Below are positions 1-63,357 of a stretch of DNA of 64,000 nt, piece by piece. The stretch comes from Phallusia mammillata (taxonomy: Eukaryota), in the NCBI GenBank assembly GCA_965637545.1, contig OZ281496.1, positions 26,288,001-26,352,000 of the forward strand, written 5' to 3'. The notes below the pieces were generated by a model that was not told the DNA's origin, did no database searches, and was given only the letters and a program-made list of their open reading frames with translations. Each line of letters starts with the position of its first letter. Position 1 is the first letter of the stretch. The translations under genes and the position numbers were made by a program.

Positions 1-399
1 TTGAGTTGGGTTGAGTTAATTTGACTTAAAAGTAATTTAATATCGTCTCGTCTCGGTTTTTAGTCTTGATTAGACCTGTTTTTTATTGTAAGGCAAAAAC
101 GACATGGTCTTTCCGCTTACCTGATTGGATAGACATTGTTGTACTTGTCCATTCAAGTTACAGTCTTCAAAACCACTTGAACTGTAACATCTCATGCATT
201 TTAGACCTACAAGCATATTATAGTTTAGACATATCATAGTTTTATTTCACTTTGCGTATTTTTAAGCATGTACGGCATTTCATATTGATCCAAACAAACG
301 CATTGTTAATTAATTTTGTGTAGCTTACTTACTTTGGACGCATAAGAGTACTTTAAAAAGCGCCAAAATCCTAATAAAAAATCTCATTCTGCTTCTCAT
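1..399 (-). CDS. Ly6/uPAR-sushi-vWA secreted protein, copy 1 (5' part only; continues off the left edge)
   Basis: Exon 399-333 encodes MRSRMRFFIRILALFKVLLCVQ followed by a GTAAGT donor. Exon 206-121 encodes (S)LKCMRCYSSSGFEDCNLNGQVQQCLSNQ with AG/GT ends. Both are homologous to exons 1-2 of the complete copies. Confidence 0.8.
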
Positions 400-899
400 T
401 AAAATTTGAAAGAGAATATTTAGGCCCTGTTGGCGACAACTAATCGGTAAAACTAAGCTGCAATCTGTCTTAACTTCTGTTTTTACCCCTCGGGGCAGTC
501 CATAAGTGCTAATTTCAAAACGACAAACTTTTAACGTAGAAACCGCGGTTGAATGAAACATCAAAGTTCATTAGTGTTGTGCGTCACGCTTTGTCCATGT
601 TATTGCACCTGTACTGGTGACAAATACTTTCTGGTCCCGTGTGTCTTGGTATTTAGCCTGTGTAAAAGTACGCAAAAAAACACAGATAACCTTCATGATA
701 ATGATAAAAAAAGTAGTTGGACGAAATCCCGCTAAAAATTTCGCTAGGAATACTTAACATTAACGCACTGCGCAAACAGTGCATTGGCATTTCTATCGAG
801 CGCGTAGTTAAAGTAAAACAGGAACTCATTTTTTGGGGTTTCCAAACATAATGTTACATATTCTTCATTCGGGCCATTGTAACTACTGCTGGTTGGTTT

Positions 900-2855
900 C
901 TATTGGTGTTCATGCATCACGTGATCGCACGGGTTGTGACAGAAGTATTTGTCCATCACATCAAGTGTTTGTGCTGTAACCGCTTCAATGTCGTCGTCAA
1001 AAATGTAGACAAGCTCTTCCGCTCCCGTGATTTGAGCCAAACGCTCTCTGTCGAACTTAGTGCTACCGGTTTGATAAGCGTTCACGTACACCTGCATAAA
1101 ACGCTTGATTTTGTAGCAATGCGTTAACGTGAATGTCCAAGTTTGATGAAATTGTTTTGGTGCAAATTAAATGTGCTTAAAACTAAATTGATTTGTCATA
1201 GGGATATTGTAGCCTACAGTAAAATTGTATGAAAACTAATGCATTTTGGTCGTATTGTTTTGAAACCCGTTTTGGATGTAACTGTGTTGTATTAAAAGTG
1301 CTGAAACCACTTACAATATAACCTCGTCTTCTTGCTTCTTCTGCCGGCCCCTTGGCGTCTTCGCTTAAGTTGGTATTTGTTATAATTCCCAAAGATTTCG
1401 GTGCTCGGCCATCCCTCATTCCAGCTTCAGGGACAAACAAATTGTCCAGAGCATACTGTATAGCATTTCCAGTGCTTAATTCTCCTGTTAGTAAGGCATT
1501 AACGTGAGAAAACAGCCATTGTGATTGATGCATTGTAGGCTGTACTTTTACCTTCGTTTACCACAGACATTCTTTTTCGTACCAACTCCACAAGGAGTGT
1601 AGCATTTTCGCCATAGTCGTTGAACTGAACTATAGATGATTCGACCGGATCACCGCTGTGATACATCGTTGAAATTTTGATCGCATCGAATGCAATAACA
1701 CCACTAAAAACATTTACAGTATACATTTGACAGGAGGGTCTTTTGGCGAAACGTAAATGCACTTACTACACGACAAACTCCAACATTTCTTGAAGTTGTT
1801 TTTCGGCATCGTTTCCAGTGACATGATAAATCTGCAGGTCGTCAAGCAAATAATAAGGCGGACAGGGTCCTTCGTAAAACAGAAACATGATAGAAGAGAA
1901 ACCTTTATTTGTTACCTAATATTTTTGCACCTACGGGCACAACATGGTGGTTCGTATGCCCACGAACCGTTACCCAAACAAACATTTGTCAAACGTCCTT
2001 TAGGCCACACGGAATAGTCCTTTCCCATGCATTGATACTCGCACACTGCTGATCCTGGTTTATTGTTACCATAACATTCAATGTTACCGTGTGGTAAGAC
2101 TGTGGATGGTTCTAGGCAATCTTGTTCTACAACTTAAAAAATTAAGTACAATGTGTAAATTTCACAAGAAGTGTCCAAACCTGGCTTGGCGTCCATGTAA
2201 AATTCAGTACATGTTGGCGGACCAACGTTGCACATATTAGTCTCACAGCAGCACGTACACAAGGAATTAATTTGATCTTTGTTGCATTGGCTTGAGTTTC
2301 CAGAGTATTTTGTGTTCTGTTTTTAATCAAAAAATTAAATCACAAATCCACAGTTTGCTACAAACAAATTTGTATGACAAAAATATTGTTAAGTGTTGTA
2401 CCTGTTGCTGATTGTTTCTGCAAGCTCCTTTGTCTTTGCATCCTTTCATTACCGTCATACGATTTCCATGCCGTCTCACGACCGTTTCACATGTCAGCTA
2501 CATGAAAAATGAATTAGATCTTAAATTACATTGGTTGATTTTTGCTGAATTTACACTTCTTAATGACCTAAATGCTAAAAAGCTTTCAACAAGACCAAAG
2601 GCAAACCCGGGAAGCCTGGAAAACTATATTCTGGTTGGTTTTTGAAGTTACCTGATTTGACATGCATTGCTCGATGCGTCCATTCATGTTGCAATCGTCA
2701 AAACTGCTTGAGCCGTAGCACATCATACACTTCAAACCTGTAGCATGTGTTTCGACGTTTATTTTTACACTGCACAGCAAAAACAAAATACATCACCTAC
2801 CTTCGGCGTTTGTCAAGACAGTTATAAGTAATCCCAATAAAATGCATTTTGACAT
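900..2855 (-). CDS. Ly6/uPAR-sushi-vWA secreted protein, copy 2 (intact, 9 exons)
   Basis: Signal exon MSKCILLGLLITVLTNAEG; LU-like LKCMMC...KGC...CTCCCETNMCN; sushi ending CLGNGSWAYEPPCC; vWA exons RPCPPYYLLDDLQIY, STGNAIQYALDNLFVPEAGMRDGRAPK, VYVNAY...FCHNPCDHVMHEHQ*. All splice phases are compatible and no internal stop was found. Confidence 0.88.
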
Positions 2856-3372
2856 TTTTCTACCTGCCTAATTTAAAATGTGACTTGCGAGTCTTGCAAT
2901 GTCTGCCACACACGGTCAGTAATCTTTGCCGGTGTTGATATGTTAAAGTTATGAGCCCTAGGCGATAAACATATTGGACGCTTTTGGTTTAGGCTTTACA
3001 CAGACCAGCAACGCAAAAGTTAATGTAAATCGCGTGGGCTTTAAGACCTTTATGTTTTCCGGATTACCAATCAATTTTGCTAAAGTTTTTGCTTGTTGTA
3101 AATTATAACCTAGTCACGATAAGTACTCGTCTTACATCTTTATATTAGTACACAATTATCGTAAAGTGTTAACGTGCATGTTAAAAGGAAAAGACAAAAA
3201 GACACGTACAACGGCAAAAAGAGGCAACAACGCACGTCGGTATACATTGTATTCCGGCATTTTTTATGAATACTGGCAATGACATCAGCGATGCAGGAAT
3301 GTGCACTGAGTATAAACAGGGTGTTCGGTAGTACGGTTTCTTTATAAAGACATGGATTGTTTTGAGTTAAGT

Positions 3373-5586
3373 CTACTCGTGGTCATGTAGCACGTGATCA
3401 CATGGATTTCCGCAGAAATAGTTGTTAATAACAGCCACGTTCTCAGTACTTAGGTTGCTGACGTCGTTATCGAACAAAAACAAGTGTTCCTCGTTCCCAG
3501 TAATCTCAAATAACTTTTTGCGGTCAAACTTGAATCCATTGGTTTCAGATCCAACCACGAAAAGCTGAAATTGTTAAACACAAAGTAAAGCTAGTTGAGG
3601 TACTTTGGCCTTGTCGTTAACGTACCTCATGTGCAAATAAACGCGATGTTTATAAATGATAAATTAACCGGACACGGAAAGTGGCCGCAAGCAACAAATG
3701 ACTGGATGCTTAAGTTTTAACGATACCTGGTAACCAAGTCTTCTTGCTTCTTCAGATGGTGTTTTCACATCATCTGCTGGATTTGCGTTGGCAATAAACA
3801 CCCATATCGCTTTGGGGACTCTGCTGTCTCTTACGCCAGCTTCAGGTGCCAAAAGGTTGTCAAGTGCGTACTGAATTGCTGCTCCGGTATTTGCTGGGCC
3901 TAAAATGAACATAATATACTCGCGATGCATTGTAACGTTCCCATCTCCTAGCTGATAGTTGGACAAATTTACTTCCGATTACAAGATCGTACGGTTTAGT
4001 TCAGTGATTCTTAACCGCGGCTCTCAGGGCCGCATGCGGCTCCCAACTACTTATTTTGCGGCTCGCACCAGACCTAAGAAAACTGCCAAAGATTGCTATG
4101 TTAACTTTCAAGGTAATTATTTTAGTGATTCTATGAGGTCTCGTTTTTTGCGGCTCCTTACACACTTAAAAAACTGCCACTTGACCCCGACATTAAAAAA
4201 GGTTGAGAACCACTGGTTCAGTTATTGATAAACATACCTGGAACAACAGATATCCTCTGCAAGGCGAGTTCAAGGAAGCGATTAAAGTCTGCTCCGTATT
4301 CGTTAAATCGAACTACACTTGTTTCTATAGGTTTTGTGGCATAATATAGGGCAGCCATCTTTAGGGCATCCTCCGCAAATTTTAAGCTGAAAAGTAGTCA
4401 TAAATATTAAAAGTAGAGCATTAAAATTATAGCTAATTTCACTTTATTACTCTCCAAATCTTCTCAGTAGTGTATCAAGCCTGTTTTGTTGATTTTCTCC
4501 TTTAAGATGAAACAATAAAACGTCATCTAAGAGGTAGTAAGGCGGGCATGGTCCTGTACGAAATACAAAATACAAAAAACTTTCAAAATTTCTTCCTCTT
4601 GCTTTTCTCTTACTTGCACAACATGGTAGTTCTCGAGCCCAACTTCCATTTCTTAAACAAACATTAACTTCTTGCCCCTTCGGCCACACGAAGTAATCTT
4701 GTCCAGTGCATTGATATTCACAAACTGAACCAGCTTTGTTCTCGTTGTTGCATTCAATGTTGCCGTGAGGAAAATTGTCTGGTACTTCAGGACAATCATT
4801 GACTGCGAAAACCAGGTAAAACCTTTGATGAGTACGTTTCCATTACAAACTCATTAAATTATTTTAGTCTGCCGTAACTTGTTTATTTTTTGTCGTAGTA
4901 TTGGAAACAGGTCCAAAATGTACATTACTTTCATATCTCCTCCTGTATTCCGGAAAAATGACTTTTGTTATTTTTTCAGTTATCTATATCGCGCATATAC
5001 CTGGTGCGCTTGATGCAAAATGGCCTGTACAAGTTGAAAATCCAACATTACAGTAATTTTTTCCGCAGCAGCAAGTACAAACTGAGTTTGGCTGATCCAA
5101 GTTACATTGAGTTGATCTGCCCGCGTATCTTGTGTTCTAAAAAATATGGAATTTCAGTGACGTTTTAAAACGCAGGTTTGCTTTTACTTGCCTGCATCTG
5201 GTTGTCTCTACACGCTCTATCATTTTTACATCCTTTCATGACTGTCATATGAACTCCATCACGCCTCACCACAGTTTCACATAATTTCTTGAGAAAATAA
5301 ATTACCAGTAGTTGGTTTGCAGTTAAAACTAAAAGCAAACTTGCAATTTTTGTTTGACCAAATCGGTCTTTTATGTACACACCTGGTTTGGCATGCACGT
5401 TAGCATTCGTCCTCGGCTGTCGCAATTGTCCAAACCCGAGCCAAAACAAGACATACATTTTAACCCTGAAACCAAAGTCAATTATTTTTATTTATTTTAA
5501 GAAGATCATCATCACTTACCATGTACTGCCGTCAGCGATCCCACCAAAACGCAAATCAAGAAAATTGTTATTGCACTTATCAACAT
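3373..5586 (-). CDS. Ly6/uPAR-sushi-vWA secreted protein, copy 3 (intact; intron 3 has a GC donor)
   Basis: MLISAITIFLICVLVGSLTAVHG, LKCMSCFGSG, sushi, TGAAIQYALDNLLAPEAGVRDSRVPK, and the tail FCGNPCDHVLHDHE*. Phases are consistent. Donor CAG|GCAAGT at 5191-5190. Confidence 0.86.
4002..4215. mobile_element. hAT-type MITE in an intron of copy 3
   Basis: TIRs CAGTGATTCTTAACC / GGTTGAGAACCACTG. Flanking 8-mers GTTTAGTT (3994-4001) and GTTCAGTT (4216-4223) form a 7/8 TSD. Confidence 0.8.
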
Positions 5587-6265
5587 CGTTGCCTTCTAAC
5601 CATTGGCAACCATTTGAAATCAAAGCCAACTTTTCAAAACCAAAGCCCTAAGGCACATATTTTACCCTAAGCCACATCGTTGCTTGTGGTGTGTAGTTTT
5701 TCTTCGGTATAATGCTACCACAGGCAAACTGTAATGCATACGTTTTTACTTTACAGTAACCGCAGCTAACTAAATCAGACACTTAGCTGTCTAAACGCAA
5801 AATAAAAGAGACTCCGGTTTTACTGTCGTTCAAACACAACAATAACGTGAAATTTATGTAAACCACAACTTTTTTAACAACGTTTATTACCAGATTGTTG
5901 TATTCAACTTATACTATAACAAGTTTTTTACTCTTTATTTCAATGTGCTAACAAGTGTAATTTTTCTAGACCTAGAAAAGGACAAGACAAGAAACGGCAG
6001 CGAAATTGTTGGACGTCAAAAACAACATAGCATACTGGTAAAAAATATTTCTATTATTTTCAGTTTAGTCGTAGTTAGTCAAACTCATATACTTTAGAAG
6101 TTTGACTAGTTTTGTAGCTTTCCAATTTTAAACTGCGTTTGGTAAGTTTTCTGGTTTGGTCACTACTTGCGAAAACAATAATTCCTAACTATACGTCAGT
6201 TTCTCGCGCATTTCTTGTATTCATTGTCAAATTTCAGTTTGTTTCTTGTTGTGAAAACTTGGCCA

Positions 6266-8431
6266 CTAGTGGTCATGCAATACGTGATCACATGGATCTT
6301 CGCAGAAATGACTGTTGATTTCAGCCACATTTTCGGGGCCTAAGTTGCCGACGCTCTTATTGAACAGAAACAAGTGGTTCTCATTTCCAGTGACTTCTAA
6401 TAACTTCTTGCGGTTGAACTCAAATCCGTCAGTATGATATCCCATGACGTATAGCTAAAAATATTGCTAGGTTAAGTTTTGTCAAGAACTTATTGCTAGG
6501 TAAAGAACTTAAATTCAATCAATTGTTTATTTTGTTCCCTAAAATATATTGCGGAGTTACACCATGACTAATATCATGGACTTGTGATTTCATTGGGGGA
6601 AAATGGTTTAGGTTTCAATTACTCTTTTTCCTACTGGATGACTTATATTGCTAAAGCATCGTTACCTGGTAACCACGTCTTCTGGCTTCTTCAGATGGTG
6701 TCTTTACATCATCTGCAGGATCCGCGTTGGCGATAAACACCCAAATCGCTTTAGGTACTCTGTCGTCTCTCATACCAGCTTCGGCTGTTAGAAGGTTATC
6801 GAGTGCGTATTGTATTGCTGCTCCAGTGTTTGCTGGACCTAAAAATAATTTACCCTTAGTTTCGAAAATTGAGAAACTGTTTTAAAACTTGCTTGGTAAA
6901 AGGTTGACTGATTGTCTTGGGTATTTTACATATTTGATATCTTAAGCAAACCTGATTCGACAGACATTCTCTGCAAAGCGAGTTCAAGGAAGCGATTAAC
7001 GTCTGCCCCGTATTCGTTAAACCGAACCACACTCGATTCGATTGGTTCCGATGTATAATAAACGGTGGCTACTTTCAGGGCATCTTCTGCAAATTTAAGG
7101 CTACAAAAAATGTTAAGTTATAATCAAGAATATACATGTTACAAAAAATACTTCATACTTTCCAAATGTTTTGACAAGCTTGTTGAGTCTCGCTTGCTCG
7201 TTTCCTCCCCGAATTTGAAACAGTAGAATATCGTCTACAAGGTAGTAAGGCGGGCATGGTCCTAAACAAATGCAAGATACTTGTACTGTCTTTTGGTGGT
7301 TGCATTTTTTTTCAGAATAAGTTTTCAGAATAAACTCTATCATGTTTTAACTTTTTCTTACTTGCACAACATGGTTGTTTGTGTGCCCACGTCCCGTTTC
7401 CTAAACAAACGTTCAGTTCCTGACCCTTTGGTGACACGAAGTAATCTTGTCCTGTACATTGATATTCACAAACCGAACCAGGTTTGTTCTCGTTATTGCA
7501 TTCAATGTTTCCATGGGGAAGGCTGCCTTGTACTGGAGGACAATCATTGGCTGTGAAAATAATTTAAATAGATGTTGAGATGAGTTGAAGGCTATTAAAT
7601 CGGAAATAGCTTCTAATATGTACGTTAATCTTCTCTTTTAAAACCTATGTCAACTTTTGTTTGAAAACAGGCAACACGATGTTTATTATTATTACTTGCA
7701 TCTGTTTTCTCACAATTACTTTATGAACCAACGCCTAACATCATACTCTTGAACCTTGATGACTTTGTTTTACCTGGTACATTCGACGTATAATGTGTTG
7801 TACATGATGGAATTCCAACATTACAATAATCCGATCAACAGCAGCAAGTGCAGACAGAGTTTAGTTCATTGGAGTTGCATTGAGTTGATCGTCCCGAATA
7901 TCTCTGGCAATGACGGAAGTTTAAGGGCTACATAGCAAAGAAACCTAACTTTTCACTTACTTGCATTTGGTTGTCCCGACAAGCTCTATCATCTTTACAA
8001 CCTTTCATGACTGTCATATGATCACCATTACGTCTCACAACAGTTTCACATGATTTCTAAACAATATAGTTTATCAATCAATTACCAACAAACATTCTTA
8101 TTTGCTTACCTGGTTTGGCATGCACATTTGTATGTGTCCATTGGCATCGCAATCGTCCACATTTAAACCCGAACAAACCATGCATTTTAGACCTGTAAGA
8201 AAGAAAAATACACGGTTAGTTTAAAAAATAAATATTTTCACATCTTTTACCTATGTCAAACATACAAATTTGATTTCAAAACAAATTTTCAACTTTCGAA
8301 ACAAAAATTCGTTAAATTTAACGAATTTGGAATCAAAATTTGTTACCAATAGGGAAAATGCATAGGGCACCGTTCCCTTGTACTCCGGTCAGTGATCTCA
8401 TCAAAACACTCAGCAAAAGAATGTCATTCAT
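6266..8431 (-). pseudogene. Ly6/uPAR-sushi-vWA copy 4, probable pseudogene
   Basis: All nine exons are recognisable. Exon 4 has an in-frame TGA at 7837-7835 (TGC TGC TGT TGA) where copies 5 and 6 have CGA, consistent with a CpG transition. The exon-1 donor position reads G|GGAAC instead of G|GT. Confidence 0.78.
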
Positions 8432-8823
8432 CTTTTCAGATTTTAGTGTCAAATGATTGTTACTATTTAGCTTTGGCTCCTACAGGTGGTCAACTAACCA
8501 CACTCTTATATGATGCCCAACGATTTGGCACGAAGCCAAGTTTATAAAAGCCCCAAGGGCATTTTTGGCTTGATCCGTAAAGCATGCGTTTCCCTTTCCT
8601 GCCGTGTTACCGCAGGCAAATTACCAGACAAACAGTTTGTGTTTAAAAAGGAGTAAATCAGGCATATCTAATTTAAATGATGGAGTGCGCATCATCACGC
8701 CCAATAAAGACACTAGATTATATTCCCTGACGGTAAATCTGACGTGAGTTGCGATATGCACTTGACTGCACTGAACATACATTTTTGTTGGCTGGTGTAT
8801 TTTTATGGTGATTCACTGCAAAG

Positions 8824-11059
8824 CTATTGGTGATCATGCAATACGTGCACACACGGATCTCCACAAAACTGTTTGTTGACTGTAGCAATGTTTTCAGGCG
8901 TGAGGTTTTCACTATCATTGTCGAACACGAACAAATGTTTTTCATCCCCAGTGATCTCTAGTAACTTTTTACGGTCAAACTTGAATCCGTCTGTTTGATA
9001 CCCGATGATATAAAGCTGAAATACATGCGGCATATGATATGTCGAGTTGTAAATTATAAAAGGTGTATGCCTCCTGTTTTAGTTTGTGTAATTTCATATC
9101 CAATGCAGCGTTACCTGGTAACCACGTCGTCTGGCTTCCTCTGATGGTGTTTTTACATCATCTGCAGGATTTGCGTTTGAAATCTGAACCCAGATTGCTT
9201 TAGGTACTCTGCTGTCTCTCATACCAGCATCGGGCGTTAGGAGGTTATCGAGTGCGTACTGAATAGCTGCTCCGGTATTTGCTGGTCCTAAAATAAACCT
9301 TGTTTACCCTAACGGTTTTGTTTAGTTAATCGTTTTGCATTATATGATGTATACCATAGGTTTGGTGTATAGGTAGGCCTAATGGTTTTGTCGCACCACA
9401 GTTTACCGAATTTACATACCTGGAACAACAAACATTCTTTCCACTGCGAGCTCAAGCAAGCGCTCGACATCTGCTCCGTATTCGTTAAACCGAATAACAG
9501 TCGATTCAACCGGTTCTGCGCTATAATATAGAGCTGCCGCCATGAGAGCATCTTCTGCAATCTTTGGGCTACAAAACAAACCGTATCAAATGAAATAAGA
9601 ATAATAAAAACACATGGAACATAATTTGCCTTCGCTTACTATCTAAGTTTTTGCACAATTTGGTTGAGCTTAACTTGTTGGTTTTCACCTCCCACATGAT
9701 ACAGGAATACATCATCCAGTAGATAGTAAGGTGGACAAGGCCCTGCAAAAAAAGCAATTGCCAGTACTTGGCGCTTAATTTACTTTCAGAAGTAAGTGTT
9801 TATTTTGTTTGGTGAAAGAAAACATTTCATCACAGTTGGAAGGCACAATTGGTATGTAATAGCTGAACGCTCTACAGCTACACCGTACTTTATTGAATCC
9901 TATCTAAAACAAATTACCGAAGTTTAGTGTCGCTGCAACATGTTTCACTTACTTGCACAACATGGTGTTTCTCGTGCCCAACTTCCATTTCCCAAACAAA
10001 CATTTACTTCTTGTCCCTTTGGCCACACGCTGTAATCTTGTCCAGTGCATTGATATACACAAACTTTGTTTGCATCATAGCATTCAACGCTGCCGTGTGG
10101 AAAGTTTGGTGTGACTTGTGGGCAGTCATTGGCTATGACAAACCATACAAACAATATGTGAAAAAATTGCCTACAATTGGCCTTAAGTCATGCCTTGACT
10201 ATATGTATTTGATACAATAATAAACAAACGATACTCCATGTTCAATTTAATCTACCCCTTTCTCAAATTAATCTCCGGTTATTATTAATTTTATATTAAC
10301 TTGTATAAAGGTAATGCAAACCTTTAATAATTTTATTGCTATTTATCAGCAAGAAACGTATGTGATTTACTTATTATCTAGTTTTTCTAAGGCTGTACTT
10401 ATGCTATTGTTTACAAACTACACTAAACGCTTCGAAACACATGATCCATGTTGTGATGTAAAAGTCAAACATTACATAAGGATAACGTTTACCTGGTGCA
10501 TTTAACGTGTAATGAGTTGTACAAGTTGGAATTCCAACATTGCAAAAATCCGCTCGACAGCAGCAAGTGCAAACAGAGTTTGGTTCATCTGAGTTACATT
10601 GAGTTGATCTTCCTGCATATCTCGTGTTCTAATTTCAAAGAAACCGACAACATTATGCCTAGAGTCGATTTTGTACAATGCTTCTTACTTGAAGCTGATT
10701 GTCTCGACATGCTCTTCTGTCCTTACAGCCTTTCACGACGCTCATATGATCACCATATCGTCTCACAACAGTTTCACACGAGCCCTAGAGAATGTGTTTG
10801 TAATTTCTTATATGCACTAGGCATTTACTTTACAAATCGAACTGATGTTGGTACCTGATTTGACATGCATTCTTCTATGTGCCCTATAGAATCACATTCA
10901 TCTATGCTGCTCGATCTTTGGCATGTTATGCATTTTAAACCTTAAAGCATTTATATTTAGTATAATAATTGACATTGAAGCCTTCTAGTGTTAAAGATGT
11001 TTACCTTGTGCGTATACCAGCCAACTGCACATCAGCACAAGCTTCCAAAGATCCTTCAT
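8824..11059 (-). CDS. Ly6/uPAR-sushi-vWA secreted protein, copy 5 (intact)
   Basis: MKDLWKLVLMCSWLVYAQG, LKCITCQRSS, sushi with a 3-aa deletion (shared with copy 6), RPCPPYYLLDDVFLYHVGG, and the tail FCGDPCVHVLHDHQ*. All phases are compatible. Confidence 0.86.
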
Positions 11060-12034
11060 TATCATGATTTTTGACAGAATTGTTGAATACCTTCCCTGAA
11101 CCTGCCTTAAATGTCTCTGGAAAAGATGTCTCGCCTACCCAAGGTTTCCTTATCGTTTGCATTATGTTGCCTTAGGGCTTGTCATGCATAACTTAGGACT
11201 TGTTATACAGGACTTCAAGCATTTTCGTGATATGATCGACCAAATAGGGCTGTACTCTGGTTCAATTAGTTATTTCTGTTAAGATCAGCGCAATAGGACG
11301 ATTGTGTGAATTCCAGTCATAAAAACGTTGTTAATTTTTTTCATAAGAACAAGACAGATTATAGCAGCAGGCGCGTTACAACCGAATGGTTTATTGTGGT
11401 AAATTAGCTGTATCGAGAAATATAACCCTGATTATTTCCGGTTTAAACGCTCCTTTTTTCTAAGAAGTTTATGCGCATAAATATACGTTCATGTGTTGTT
11501 TTGCAACACATGCGATATCGTGGCTTTAGGGTTTTAAGCAAGCCAGAAGCCTTGTCCCGTGTAGGTTTTAATGTCATTTATTGCACTCATGTGAACGAAA
11601 ATATGTTATGTGACGTTTTTTGGGGGCTTTGGTTTTTCTTAAACGCGTAAAAAAAACATATAGCAGTTGTATACACACCAACTATACAATATTATAATTT
11701 ATCCTCAATGTTTAAAGTTGTGGTTTTTTAACAAAACTGATTCTGTGTTTAGGATTAGAAATTCTTGACAACCACTAATTTTTTTAACCCGAATTCTCAG
11801 ATCATGTGACATACAATCTGTGAAATCTTATATGGTGGTTAACATAAAACGCAAATAAACATTCTAAACTTAATTTGCTAATGTCGGCTTTTCAATGATG
11901 TCACACAAATTGCTCTGTATTTATAACTAAAATGACAAAACTCCAATATACATAAGTACTGTTTATTGACATCTTAATGTGTTAGTTAGATTTCTCCTTA
12001 ATGTGGATATAACACTGTCATTAAGTATGAACAT

Positions 12035-13523
12035 CTACTGGTGTTCATGTAATACGTGAACACATGGATCTCCACAGAACTGCACGTTGATCACATCAAT
12101 AAGCTTTTTTGAGCTTAGCTTGTGGATTTTCCCCGCCAGTGTGATACAGAAAAACATCGTCTAACAGGTAGTAAGGTGGACATGGTCCTGTTTAAAAATC
12201 AAATATATGTTTCCGTATTTATTTGTCACTATTTTTTACCAAAGTTGAAAAACTGTATACATTCAATCATTTTCTTACTTGCACAACATGGTGTTTCTCG
12301 TGCCCAACTTCCATTTCCCAAACAAACATTTGCTTCTTGTCCCTTTGGCCACACTGAGTAGTCTTCTCCTGTACATTGATATTCACAAACCTTATTCCTC
12401 TTGTGGCACTCAACGCTGCCGTGTGGAAAGTTGGGTGACACTTGTGGACAGTCATTAACTATAAAAGATACAAAAGTTACATTTTCTGCAACTAAATGAG
12501 TTGTATTTGCGATCATCACAGGTAGCACAAGCTTATAATTGGGACACATATTTATCCAAACTGTACCACTAACCACTAAAACAATTGCCATTTTTCATAA
12601 AAACAGTTGATCTTCATATGTACTAGTTGCCATTTAAGCATATATTTATTAAGTGAGGTTTGTTTTTCATCAATTGTTATTTGCTGTAATCTGACTAATT
12701 TAAAGCTCGACTCGATAATTTGTATCTATATCGAGTATACATTATACCTGGTGCGTTCAACGTGTAATGAGTTGTACAAGTTGGAATTCCAACATTGCAG
12801 AAATCCGCTCGACAGCAGCAAGTGCAAACAGAGTTTGGTTCATTCGAGTTGCATTGAGTTGATCTTCCGGAGTATCTCGTGTTCTAATAATTTTAAAGGG
12901 TTTAAGTCTTATTAAAAAGCGCGATTTTACTGTACATTACCTGCATCTGATTGTCCCGACAGGCTCGAACATCTTTGCAACCTTTCATGAGCGTCATGTG
13001 ATCACCATCACGTCTCACTACAGTTTCACATGATTTATGAGAAAAATAGATGCGTTGGTCAGTTTTCGGTTTGCATGTTTTGTAATGGTTAACGTTTAGT
13101 TATTTTACATGCGGTAAATGATCATCCATTGTATTTGCAAAGAATTTAGATTTTCATAAAATTTCGTGCCGAGACGTACATTCATTTGTTCTAACGCAGT
13201 TTAGACATTTTAAGCAAAATATATATTTTCGAGTTGGTTTGACTGATCAATTCTTTCGTGTGGGTGTTTTCAGCATTTTATTCTGAAGCCTTAAACGTCA
13301 GTTAAGCCTCAAACGCCAGTTACTAGGTATACCTGATTTGGCATGCATTTTTGTATGCTTCCATTGGCATCGCAATTGTCTACGCTTGAACCATAACACT
13401 TCATGCATTTCAGACCTGAAAATGCTTTTGTGAGTTTTGCTTGTTGACTTGATTATTTTACAACTTACCTTGAATTCCGTTTAATCATCCTATTAAAACA
13501 CAGATACTGAGAATAATTTTCAT
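12035..13523 (-). pseudogene. Ly6/uPAR-sushi copy 6 with the vWA core deleted, pseudogene
   Basis: TGA at codon 13 of the signal exon (13487-13485). Exon 6 (CPPYYLLDDVFLYHTGGENPQAKLKK) is fused directly and out of frame to the terminal INVQFCGDPCVHVLHEHQ* segment. Exons 7-8 and most of exon 9 are missing. Confidence 0.82.
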
Positions 13524-15545
13524 CTTTGCTCTAAAGAATGTGTCCCTGACTGACTTTTTGCCGGCTAACTGGACCCTTGCGTGATTGCCAACTGTTTTTT
13601 AAGCCTTGGGGCATTTTTTGCAATTTGCCTTTTTTCAATTTCCATAGTTTATGGTTGTCGTTTTATTACAACAGTATACTCGCTTTCCATCGCTTTTTAC
13701 GGTCAAAAATGCATCCAAATGCGGCAAATGTCGATGCTTGAGTCGAATAAATGCGATAACATCCAACGCGAATTTCCTACGCTAGATCGATAAGATATAT
13801 TGCTTATGCGTTTCTGATTGGTTGCGATGTCTCAAGTTGTAATGGGGCTTAAATGCTACATATTTCGTCAAAAAGCTACTAAAGTTAGTTATTTACGATC
13901 ATTTACCACAAACTATTTAAGCAGTTCAAAGTGGTTTTAAACCCACTCCAATTATATAAAGTCGATCACTCTCCTGTAAATGGCAATGCTATCGGTAAAC
14001 GAAATCTTATACGTCCTTAATCAGCCTGACGACAATGTTTGGATTCAATATGTGTTCAACCCCGCGTCCCTGACACCTATCGATTTATCCGAAACGGACA
14101 TAGAGGTGTTCAAATTAAACTGAAATGAAAATATACTAGACTTTGATAATAGTTGATAAAATAAACATTGCTTAAAATATGAACTGAAATAAAAGTATGC
14201 AAGATATTGATATTTGGTTGATAAAATAAACACTGCTTTTTGTGTTTGGTTTTGGTGAGTTTGAACTGCTCATAAGATTTGCGATGTCCACTTACAGGTT
14301 AAACGAATGTTTTACATTTCGTTGATGTTGCCATTAGGCCACATAAATATAAATGCTTTTGCTGTAACGATGTTTCTTTTTGAAGCGAACTACGTTGGGT
14401 CGTATTTATTGGCGTTCTCTTTAAAAATGCGAGTGTTCTTTGGTATTTTAATGAAATGGTTGTTATTATTTGTAGCTTAAACGCAGTGTGTTTAAAAATC
14501 AGCAATCCGTAATTGTTAACATGTTGTTAACACAGGTTTACACTTCGTTTGTGTTTCTCAAGTTGGTGGGTCGCATTTTTTTAATGGGGTCATGAAGGTA
14601 TTTTTATTGGTATCACAAAAATTTTGTTCATTACGCACAATATTGTCACCTTAGTTTGTCATTTATCGGCAAAAATGATATTCAAATATTTTATTATGCA
14701 ACATATTGTTACGATATCTATATAAGTTTGGAATTTCAGCTATTAAAGTTTAATAGTGATAATTAAACTGACTTTATCATACATATCCATGTTTAAGGAC
14801 AAAATAAAAACGCTGACGATTGGTTGTAAAAATGTATATGCATGAACACACATCGATAGTTTCCTAATTATGTGTTAGTTAAGAGCACGGGGAGGAGGGT
14901 TGTGTTGAAAAACCTCCAATGTGTGCAATGTGTGTAGCAAAGATAAAAAGTCGCTGACATGATACACATTATAGTTCGGGTTAACCCTATACGCTGGTAT
15001 CCTAGAGCAACCATGCCGACTACGATTTCTATGCTACGACAATGCGTTATAGGCAAAAAATAAGACATTTTTAGATTAAAAATGATAAACTAGTATTATT
15101 TGCACTGGAGAAAATCACTAAGTGGTTGTTGTTGCATTAATGTTATCACTTCTTGTTTTGAAGGTATTCGCATATTTGTAACCACAGCCAATTTTGTTGG
15201 TCAGAGTTTATTTCACTCGGTCAAAATCGTAGCAGTACAATTGCAGTACAACAAAAATAAGCCGAAAATAAACGGGCGTCTTGTCATATCGCAGATAAAG
15301 TTCTTACTCCAGACATTTATTTTTGTGTTCAGATTCTTTGTTGTATACCGCATTTTAATTTTACTTTGTTTATAACCAACCTAAAGTAAAAAGTATAGTC
15401 TATTAGTCACAATGGTGTAATCACACATACACGAGTCCGACATAAATTTTAAATTTTATCAATCTGTGGGAGTTCAAATGTTGGTCAAAAAACCGTAAGT
15501 GTTTTAAATTATATCTTTGCAGACATTAACCAGGCTTGTTTCGTT

Positions 15546-17605
15546 TTACTCGTGTTCGTGCATTACGTGGTCACACGGATTTGAACAGAAATGATTGTTC
15601 AATTCCTTGATCTGTTCCGCTGAAAGATTGCCGGTTTCTCTGTCGAACACAAACACGTTTTTTTCGTCTCCGGTAACTTCCACTAACTTCTTGCGATCGA
15701 ACTTAAATCCGTCAAGTCCATAAGCCATGGCATACACCTAAATAACAAGTTCCAAATGTATGCAATTAGATTACAGTTATTGCGATTGGAAAGCATTTAA
15801 TTTTCGGTCGTGCAAATAGATTGTAGGGTCATATTATTTTCGATTAGAAAACAATGCAATTGCTTATAATAAGCGTTGATGGTTTATACAATGTTTTTTG
15901 TAAACACGTTCAGTCTAATGTTTTTCGTCAGATTCGTGTCAAAACTCAATATTTTAATGCTACCAAAATATAGTGGCCAAATAACCAAAAACAACATATG
16001 ATTTGCTAAGAAAAAATACTCTATTTCACTTTTATACAAAGGCTGCAGCTGTGTAACTTTTAGCACATTGATTTTATGTGATACATATTGATTCATACAA
16101 AAGGCCAACGTTACCCGAATGCCACGTCTTCTGGCTTCAGCGGACGCCCTTCTTACATCACCTGTGGGATTGGCGTTCGCAATGAGTAAAAAAATTGCTT
16201 TGGGCACTCTGTCGTCTCTCAGGCCGGATTCGCGGGTAAACAGGTTATCGATTGCGTACTGAATCGCGGGACCAACATTTGCTGGACCTATAGACGTTAA
16301 GGTTTATAGGATTTGTCACGTCATCATAGATCTTTATGTAACTTATTCTTAGTAACCTTGAGCTACTGAGATTCTTTCGTGCACAATCTCCGACAAACGT
16401 GATTTGTTTGTTCCGTATTCGTTGAATTTAACCACACTGGACACGACTGGCTCGTCGCTAAAATACATTGCTGAAATCATGATGGCATCCTCCGCTACGG
16501 CCGGCCTTAAGAAGTAACAAAAAAATGTTTACATTGTATACATGTAGGCTTAGTAACAAAGGTGAGAAAACACATCGCGCTGCTTACCAAGTAATCCTTT
16601 CGCGAAATCTATTCAGTCTTGCTTCCTGGTTGTCACCTCCAATGTGATAAGATAAACGTTATCCAACAAGTAGTAAGGTGGACATGGCCCTAAAATAATT
16701 GATATATATTTAAAAAGGTAGGTCACATTGGAACAGCACTTGGGAAATTGTAATAACGTAAAATAATATGACTTCAACCCACTTGCACAGCAGGGCCGTT
16801 CTCTATTCCACGTCCCATTTCTTAAACAAACGTTCGCTTCCTGACCTTTAGGCCACACAGAATAATCTTTGCCCGTGCACTGGTATTCACAAACTGAACC
16901 TGGTTTGTTTCCGTTGTGACACTCGACTTTGCCGTGTGGAAAATTACGTGGCACTTGTAAGCAGTCAGCAACTAATGGAATTTAAATAAGTTGAATTTAG
17001 TTACTTTTGTCGATATCGTTGCCCTTCCGATACTTATATTTGAATGTACCTCGGCTTGCTGAACTGTAAACGGAAGCGCATGTTGGCATGCCAACGTTAC
17101 AAAAATCCTTACTACAGCAACATGTGCACATTGAATTGGCTTGATCCAAGTTGCATTGAGTGGACCTTCCAGAATATCTTGTATTCTGCCAAACACAAAT
17201 GAATAATTAATCAATTAAGGAAGAAAAAAGATTTTTTCACATATGCTTGCCTGCATTTGGTTGTCTCGGCAAGCTCTTCGGTTTTTACAACCTTTCACGA
17301 CACGCATGCGATCACCATAGCGTCTCACGACAGTTTCACATGATTCCTAGATGTAGTTGTAAACATTGTCAATTGTTCTTGATACAATTTTAGATTTTTT
17401 ACCTGATTTGACATGCAGTCTTTTATCTTTCCCTTGAAGTCACAATTGTCAAAACTCGATCCAATGCGACTCATGCATCTTATGCCTGAAACCAAAGTAA
17501 TTTGTTCAAACTGACCAAAAATGCAGTTATTTGCAAAAATGTTTTACCTTCTGCCGTTTTCGTGGTAACTAAGACAATGCAAAATATTTCAAAGTGTTTC
17601 ATCAT
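15546..17605 (-). pseudogene. Ly6/uPAR-sushi-vWA copy 7, frameshifted (pseudogene or assembly indel)
   Basis: Nine exons are present. A 1-nt deletion near 16650 in exon 6 (GTT TAT CT- TAT CAC ATT GGA, versus paralog VFLYHVGG) gives an early TGA. The second LU cysteine is replaced (CMSR versus CMSC). Intron 3 has a GC donor at 17250-17249. Confidence 0.7.
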
Positions 17606-62209: not shown

Positions 62210-63357
62210 TGAACGATATAGTGCAAGCACAACAGGCGAAAATGCACAAGCGCAGCGGGATATAACGTAAAGTAATTATAAGAGAACAAAGGCTTATCGT
62301 GATGGGTTGAGTGTGCTATATTGTGACAGTGCGTAACTAATGCCCGATATTTGAAGAGGAAGTCGAACGCAAAATGTCGCGGAAAACTGGGCTGAGGTTT
62401 TTGCCGTCGTTACGGTTTAAAACATTTGAATTAGAATTTATGAGGCAATTTAGTATTTTGTTCAGCATTACACCAGTTGAACGACAAATTTGTTTAAATA
62501 TGCAACCTGGTGGACGAAACGCCTGTTCAGTATTTTCAATTGCTATGAATTTGACAAGTTATAAAAGTCCCCTTTGATATGTGCTCTTGGATTGCGCCTT
62601 TGCACTATAAAGAATGTAGTGTCCTTGCGGGTCGTGTTGATTTACCAAGACAGCTAAAGTCAAAACAAAAACAAGGTGCTACACATTACGAGTATTCTTG
62701 TATTTCCGTTGTTCTTTTGCGTAGTGGTTGTCCTTTGATGCGTTGGTAATTCAAATGACGTTTCCATTTGCTATTGTTTGGTTAAGCAAACTATGTCGAC
62801 GCTTTATTACGGTACGATAACACAGGACAATAGTTTTGACATGGACAATAACGCGTCATCCGAAAAACAAATGTACGCCGGCAGTTTTCTTAAAACGATT
62901 GTTCGTTTGATAGACACGGACAGCGCCATGCTCTGTTTTGTGTAGGCTATATGGTTGTGAACTGCAAGATTATTTAACGGCGATTGATTTTCTTGCGTGT
63001 ACAGCTAGGAAAATCACAACCCTTCGTTCGAACAGTTTAGTTTTTTGATGCAAGTGGTCACTAAAGGCAACTCGTTTTCATGGATATTGTCATTGTATGC
63101 AGACTAACCAATAAGTTATTCTGACGAAGGCCGCGATCGGCTAAAAGTTCTAGATAGTCAGCTAAAAACAGATAGCCTAGTAGATAAGCAGTGTGGACAT
63201 GGGCGCCGGCAGAAATGTTTCCAGAGAAGGTCAAATTTTGACAAATACACACTTGCAGGGATAGATTACTATATCAAGTAATTATGTAAACACCTGGCAT
63301 AAAATAATGCAGTGGATTTGAGTCAACGATGAAAAATCCCCGCACAGTCACGCAACT

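Follow-up and report, generated by a model that had tools for sequence, protein, structure and literature searches.

A tandem array of LU-sushi-vWA genes in the ascidian Phallusia mammillata, belonging to a constrained family of putative extracellular binding adaptors

The array and its genes

The stretch of Phallusia mammillata DNA analyzed here (64,000 nucleotides of contig OZ281496.1, hereafter the window) carries at its left end a tandem array of genes whose predicted products join an LU-like domain, a sushi domain and a vWA domain. A tblastn search with the exon peptides of copy 2 gave seven ordered sets of matches on the minus strand, between positions 73 and 17498 and spaced 2.3-4.5 kb apart, and a repeat search found repeat families in register with them, each with 4-7 copies beginning at 117, 2648, 5379, 8106, 10851, 13329 and 17399. 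The model of copy 2 (c2) was built by hand from the sequence, while those of the other copies were obtained with a phase-constrained exon finder. c2 consists of nine exons separated by GT-AG introns of phases 1,0,0,1,1,2,1,0, and the modeling showed that c3 and c5 follow the same plan, both being intact. The matches, the repeats and the gene models thus bear out the claim of the original prediction that seven same-strand copies share one nine-exon plan. The copies are as follows.

1..399, minus strand: c1, 5' end only in the window; exon 1 at 399/387-333 (signal peptide), exon 2 at 206-121; intact
900..2855, minus strand: c2, intact, 393 amino acids (aa), nine exons, hand-built model
2855-2801, 2737-2652, 2497-2402, 2316-2181 and 2126-1935, minus strand: c2 exons 1-5, from high to low
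1869-1767, 1703-1552, 1484-1315 and 1091-900, minus strand: c2 exons 6-9, from high to low
3373..5586, minus strand: c3, intact, 395 aa, nine exons; exon-3 donor GC; 3' untranslated region (UTR) extending to at least 3152
6266..8431, minus strand: c4, disabled by a single in-frame stop, remaining exons clean in the exon modeling
7837-7835, minus strand: TGA stop in c4 exon 4, immediately following the CTCCC motif in the three-frame listing
8824..11065, minus strand: c5, intact, 391 aa, nine exons by exon modeling
12035..13415, minus strand: c6, a dead copy, exon 1 missing
15546..17605, minus strand: c7, disabled because one nucleotide is missing from exon 6 (~16648-16652), which shifts the frame; exon-3 donor GC, as in c3

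The tally of three intact copies, three disabled ones and one running off the edge was exact, and the last of these, c1, could be followed into the leftward DNA, where its exons 3-9 reach down to C3:26286158 and all nine exons are clean. Four copies are therefore intact (c1, c2, c3 and c5) and three disabled (c4, c6 and c7). The count of seven genes stands for the window itself and falls short of the local cluster, which has nine members once two divergent copies to the left are included.

C3:26280875-26283743, minus strand: very divergent family member left of the window
C3:26277107-26280435, plus strand: very divergent family member left of the window, tail to tail with its minus-strand neighbor

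The three disabled copies are damaged in different ways. In c7, the second cysteine of the LU domain is also changed to Arg (17468-17466), and c4 compared with c3 gives a ratio of nonsynonymous to synonymous substitution (dN/dS) of 0.14. Since neither c4 nor c7 shows relaxed constraint, their lesions, as read from the assembly sequence, appear to be recent or allelic. In c6, the AG acceptor of exon 3 reads AT (13038-13037), and a frame-breaking deletion fuses exon 6 with the last part of exon 9 (~12095-12125), with loss of the vWA exons. Its exons 2-3 are nearest to c4 (81% and 88% nucleotide identity) and its exons 4-5 nearest to c5 (93% and 86%), and this c4-like/c5-like mosaic points to unequal exchange within the array, by crossing-over or gene conversion.

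Transcription and integrity of the array

Contigs of four public runs were aligned to positions 1-5800 of the window, two of them RNA-like by guess as to their kind (X1 and X2) and two read as DNA (X3 and X4), since their contigs cover the introns and lack the joints described here. X1 and X2 contigs are joined at 204/331, 1089/1313, 1483/1551, 1703/1767, 1868/1934, 2126/2181 and 2316/2402, with CT..AC ends; these joints match exactly the predicted intron 1 of c1 (204 to 331, 126 nt skipped) and introns 8 to 3 of c2, six of its eight, the c2 joints occurring in X1. Contigs of both runs likewise join exons 9-8-7-6 and 3-2 of c3 at the predicted borders, and one extends into its 3' UTR, down to 3152. 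As the joints at predicted introns occur only in X1 and X2, c1, c2 and c3 are transcribed and spliced as modeled, the two runs being RNA-like by guess, and the expression of the array, which the original prediction had left to be checked, was thereby seen for three copies.

Ascidian genomes are highly heterozygous, and an array of this kind might in principle be an assembly artefact, made of collapsed or duplicated haplotypes instead of true paralogues. The data make this extremely improbable: a synonymous distance (dS) of ~1 and protein differences of 15-40% separate adjacent copies, well above the allelic level, c1, c2 and c3 each have separate spliced transcripts, and a 10.5-kb DNA contig of X3 runs through positions 1-4042, which hold c1, c2 and a portion of c3, with five differences. 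Haplotypes do not account for the tandem order.

Two features of these contigs stood out. A 3992-nt RNA-like contig of X1 (record 1) mixes exons of c1 and c2 and jumps back by 2200 (window 121-2320), which we attribute to the joining of paralogous transcripts during de Bruijn assembly and not to trans-splicing. In addition, intron 7 of c3 holds a very high-copy repeat (window 3881-4268), where the summed contig depth is ~700x that of the flanks in both DNA runs, and many loose contig ends fall within it, at 4002-4060.

Domain architecture of the predicted proteins

The predicted proteins, ~390 aa long, begin with a signal peptide, followed by a 14-cysteine LU-like domain, a six-cysteine sushi domain, a vWA domain and the end CxNPCDHVLHxH, which is conserved from Ciona to Phallusia. 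Of the 24 cysteines of the mature protein, the LU domain with its linker holds 14 and the sushi domain six, while two lie in C-A-R-P-C before the vWA domain and two in C-x-N-P-C after it; all 24 columns are essentially invariant in an alignment of 56 sequences. The last two pairs (CC-x-R-P-C before, C-x-N-P-C after) probably staple the ends of the vWA domain together; the CCARPCPP junction to which the first belongs is common to the window genes and the database homologues. The motifs CxCCCxxxxCN, CPPYY and AIQYALDNL and the His-rich end are present in the array copies, so that the fixed motifs named from the sequence beforehand (with CPPYYL as the second) and the short His tail were seen again.

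The only strong hydrophobic stretch of the proteins is N-terminal: past residue 25, the 19-residue hydropathy maximum is 0.8-1.42, and the final 20 residues are polar and His-rich. No glycosylphosphatidylinositol (GPI) signal or transmembrane helix was found in a hydropathy scan of the copies, in agreement with the earlier assignment, and because the C-terminal end is hydrophilic and the sole strong hydrophobic stretch lies at the N terminus, the proteins look secreted.

Pfam scans and searches were run on single exons or on full-length database homologues, with gathering scores of 20.7 bits for Sushi (PF00084) and 23.8 bits for VWA (PF00092). Exon 5 matched Sushi above the cut-off in c2 (25.0 bits), c3 (27.2), c4 (29.6) and c7 (28.9), covering model positions 1-56 in the first three and 3-56 in c7, and fell below it in c5 (17.5) and c6 (15.4). 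Exon 8 alone matched VWA with 28-36 bits (36 in c2), and full-length homologues with 45-63 bits.

The LU part has the expected framework, namely an LxCxxC start, a CCxxxxCN end and conserved cysteines in all intact copies, with c7 lacking the second. Searched against the PDB, the family profile matched LYPD1 (6zss; E 4.5e-4) over residues 2-86 of 86, the entire LU domain, and also the collagen VI alpha-3 vWA domain, integrin I and vWF A domains, and the sushi domains of DAF and CR1. Together with the two Pfam assignments, the LYPD1 match bears out the proposed LU-sushi-vWA order. In the ESM Atlas, the ESMFold model of homologue P0129 (residues 18-118) matched nine LU-clan clusters (TM-score 0.59-0.74), and the AlphaFold2 (AF2) model of homologue P0089 has a predicted local distance difference test (pLDDT) score of 86 overall and 88-95 in the LU part, falling below 50 at residues 384-386; whole-model fold-match lists against the PDB were filled by the vWA domain. 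Membership in the LU clan is assigned from motif, profile and predicted fold, and not from a curated model. Compared with Ly6/uPAR proteins (LYPD1, CD59 and PSCA), with which it shares the start and end motifs, the window LU has 14 cysteines instead of 8-10, is fused to a sushi and a vWA domain, and belongs to proteins without a GPI anchor; it would be a three-finger domain with two extra disulfides.

The vWA domain of the AF2 model of P0089 was closest to collagen VI alpha-3 N2 (Z 22.9, root-mean-square deviation (rmsd) 2.0 over 178 residues), followed by PTMP1 of the mussel byssus matrix (Z 21.6), the integrin alpha-1 I domain (21.3), C2a (16.5) and factor B (15.8). Matches of the collagen VI/matrilin/PTMP1 group were hence the best in both sequence and fold, and the predicted domain is collagen-VI/matrilin-like rather than factor B-like. 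The window proteins nonetheless differ from that group in having a single vWA domain, no collagen, EGF or coiled-coil parts, and no metal ion-dependent adhesion site (MIDAS): H-x-(T/K/G)-x-(N/E) stands in place of DxSxS and, in the window copies, Asn in place of the beta-4 Asp, while the Thr is retained.

These features bear on whether the proteins might form a humoral immune or complement-like family ('complement-like' being one of the options named in the original prediction), in which a CD59-like LU, a regulator-like CCP (sushi) and a factor B/C2-like vWA would serve for opsonization, as a convertase decoy or in regulation. Factor B and C2 are likewise secreted and have CCPs upstream of a vWA domain, an order that the window proteins recall; Foldseek aligned ~300 model columns to C2 in C4b2, but at an rmsd of 14-15, and a C2 cluster came second in an Atlas feature search (0.85), which we take as a lead only. 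Factor B and C2 differ, however, in having three CCPs, not one, a serine protease and a MIDAS-bearing vWA, whereas the window proteins have an LU domain in front and stop right after a vWA domain of more distant fold. The MIDAS that factor B and C2 use for binding C3b/C4b is destroyed here, no serine protease is encoded, the gene ending after the vWA domain with the RNA-like contig running on into the 3' UTR, and the vWA domain is nearer to those of collagen VI, integrin I and vWF A in fold and sequence. The complement-like label is accordingly weak, and we consider such a role unlikely.

Family size, homologues and phylogeny

Six-frame searches of the 240-Mb assembly gave at least 56 matches to the vWA exon and no fewer than 56 loci with the sushi exon, almost all of them on C3, and the array is one cluster of this family; exon sizes are near-constant throughout.

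C3, 17.97-18.63, 20.09, 20.41 and 25.69-25.76 Mb: family clusters (six-frame search)
C3, 26.28-26.305, 27.11-27.15, 29.05-29.12 and 29.86 Mb: family clusters (six-frame search)
C8: one family locus outside C3 (six-frame search)

When 1.84 billion representative proteins were searched with an exon-8 profile, 126 matches were obtained, with multi-vWA collagen VI chains on top, followed by a few proteins of ~390 aa (H2YH32 and H2ZPS8 of Ciona savignyi and a 'MUP-4-like' protein of Phallusia mammillata), which have Sushi then VWA, ~110 N-terminal residues without a Pfam family, and the motifs of the window genes. Word-based protein searches returned nine relatives, all from Ciona or Phallusia and all with automatic names only. 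The homologues like the window proteins (H2ZPS8, H2YTD1 and H2YH32 of C. savignyi; XP_009862474.1 'matrilin-2' and a 'matrilin-3-like' protein of C. intestinalis; CAB3263660.1 'MUP-4-like' and two others of Phallusia) share the architecture, the cysteine pattern, the CCARPCPP junction and the conserved end, at 30-60% identity; they differ in being automatic predictions with misleading names, and Ciona has few members as against the at least 56 loci here. One Phallusia homologue, P0066, is identical to locus C3:29110958 in the aligned columns. We provisionally regard the family as restricted to ascidians, the coverage of other tunicates in the database being uncertain. Among Atlas clusters, the nearest (score 0.97) is one named 'P-selectin-like', with an 878-aa representative and 52 chordate members that carry an LU-like part at the N terminus besides VWA and Sushi; this may be the cluster of the family itself, in which case its representative would be a model fusing two genes.

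In a quick IQ-TREE phylogeny, built without c6 and without loci having fewer than six clean exons, c1 and c2 are paired with SH-aLRT support of 100, the remaining copies group as (c7,(c5,(c4,c3))) with support of 98, and a single clade (85) unites all six window copies. The Ciona proteins lie outside a 44-gene Phallusia expansion, and the two copies to the left of the window (C3:26277107-26283743; L001 and L002) branch near the Ciona sequences and may be old founders of the local cluster. The family is old, present in Ciona with few members and expanded in Phallusia, and the birth-and-death mode proposed for the array fits, with duplication in place attested by neighbors that are sisters and by the c6 mosaic, and with some copies dead.

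Literature searches found no study of this LU-sushi-vWA architecture or family, and LOC100175501 gave no paper; the gene model called 'matrilin-2' in papers on Ciona, KH.L132.4, could not be linked to the family, and a 2026 survey of invertebrate LU domains does not cover tunicates. The earlier statement that no function is known was upheld.

Selective constraint across the family

Codon models were assembled from locally joined exons and dN/dS calculated by the Nei-Gojobori method. Among the window copies, dN/dS is 0.09-0.34 per domain, and pairs as close as c1-c2 and c3-c4 already have a dS of 0.96-1.1. Of 14 independent sister pairs taken from the family, 13 give a dN/dS of 0.08-0.28, the remaining pair being saturated; dS is never below 0.3 and mostly near 1. 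The highest value in any 15-codon window is 0.65, and it falls in the linker between the LU and sushi domains, not in the LU loops; no hypervariable segment was found in the alignment of 56 sequences. The family is therefore, by these comparisons, under purifying selection and does not evolve rapidly, contrary to the 'fast-evolving' label given to it previously.

This constraint bears on two alternative functions. Large tandem expansions with pseudogenes are typical of immune families and would suit the complement-like role discussed above, but a dN/dS of 0.08-0.28 with no hot region is unlike that of arms-race genes. Many secreted, Cys-rich tandem paralogues could also suggest a gamete or allorecognition family, in which the paralogues would give specificity, and sushi domains do occur in tunicate recognition proteins; purifying selection throughout the family and the lack of a hypervariable segment speak against this, and we hold it to be highly improbable.

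A proposed role as extracellular binding adaptors

Taken as a whole, we read the locus as a tandem array of genes for secreted LU-sushi-vWA proteins that would act as extracellular binding adaptors on matrix, tunic or cell surface, a reading to which we give about an even chance (roughly 0.5). Because the MIDAS site is lost (DxSxS to HxXxX, beta-4 Asp to Asn), the vWA domain is proposed to bind its matrix, tunic or cell-surface partner without metal, as is the case for vWF A1 and A3. For the LU-sushi head we propose a second partner; which partners are bound, or where the gene is expressed, would vary between paralogues.

Several points weigh against this proposal. The putative adaptor role is drawn from domain analogy. 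In full-length homologues, the LU part gave no Pfam match to UPAR_LY6, Toxin_TOLIP or Activin_recp at E up to 10, nor did single LU exons of the window, scanned one by one, give any Pfam LU match. The X1 and X2 runs that yielded the spliced contigs are RNA by guess only, the lesions of c4 and c7 are those of the assembly sequence, and dS is near saturation for many pairs, which makes dN/dS rough and would leave room for a few positively selected sites.

A different use of the lost MIDAS would be a metal-binding or metal-switched extracellular protein, in which the His at the position of the former MIDAS Asp and the C-terminal H-x-x-H-x-H bind zinc, nickel, copper or another metal. The two could then form a new metal-dependent switch or carrying site, and the more than 50 Phallusia copies an ascidian-specific system for extracellular metal handling or metal-gated adhesion. 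Metal accumulation is a known trait of the genus Phallusia, to which the expansion is confined, and both the replacement of the first MIDAS Asp by His, seen in nearly all members, and the CxNPCDHVLHxH end are conserved across the Ciona-Phallusia divergence. However, no ligand takes the place of the DxSxS serines, and in the window copies the beta-4 Asp has become Asn; moreover, the C terminus of the vWA fold lies opposite the MIDAS face, and the last residues of the model are those of low confidence. We regard metal binding as very unlikely, and the metal-handling or metal-gated system built upon it as equally so.

Whichever partners the proposed adaptors may have, the family very likely does something, since it is large, conserved between Ciona and Phallusia, transcribed and constrained. 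LU, CCP and vWA modules are each well known, and their combination in this order in one small secreted protein was found only in ascidians. As Ciona has few members, the family would give convenient access to the extracellular biology of ascidians (tunic, blood or epidermis), and the present result corrects the label 'fast-evolving complement-like', inviting as that label may be.

Neighboring features of the window

To the right of the array, two minus-strand homeobox exons lie at ~24541 and ~34788 of the window, which fits the 'Hox10/Hox5' label of the original prediction. A conserved linkage of the family to Hox genes in Ciona was considered and rejected: in C. intestinalis, family member P0131 (L034:17076-19546) lies ~4 kb from a homeobox gene, and the motif of that gene, WFQNRRAK, is non-Hox. 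Finally, the C-terminal exon peptide gave a weak tblastn match at window positions 63185-63253 (E 0.006, 23 aa), probably by chance.

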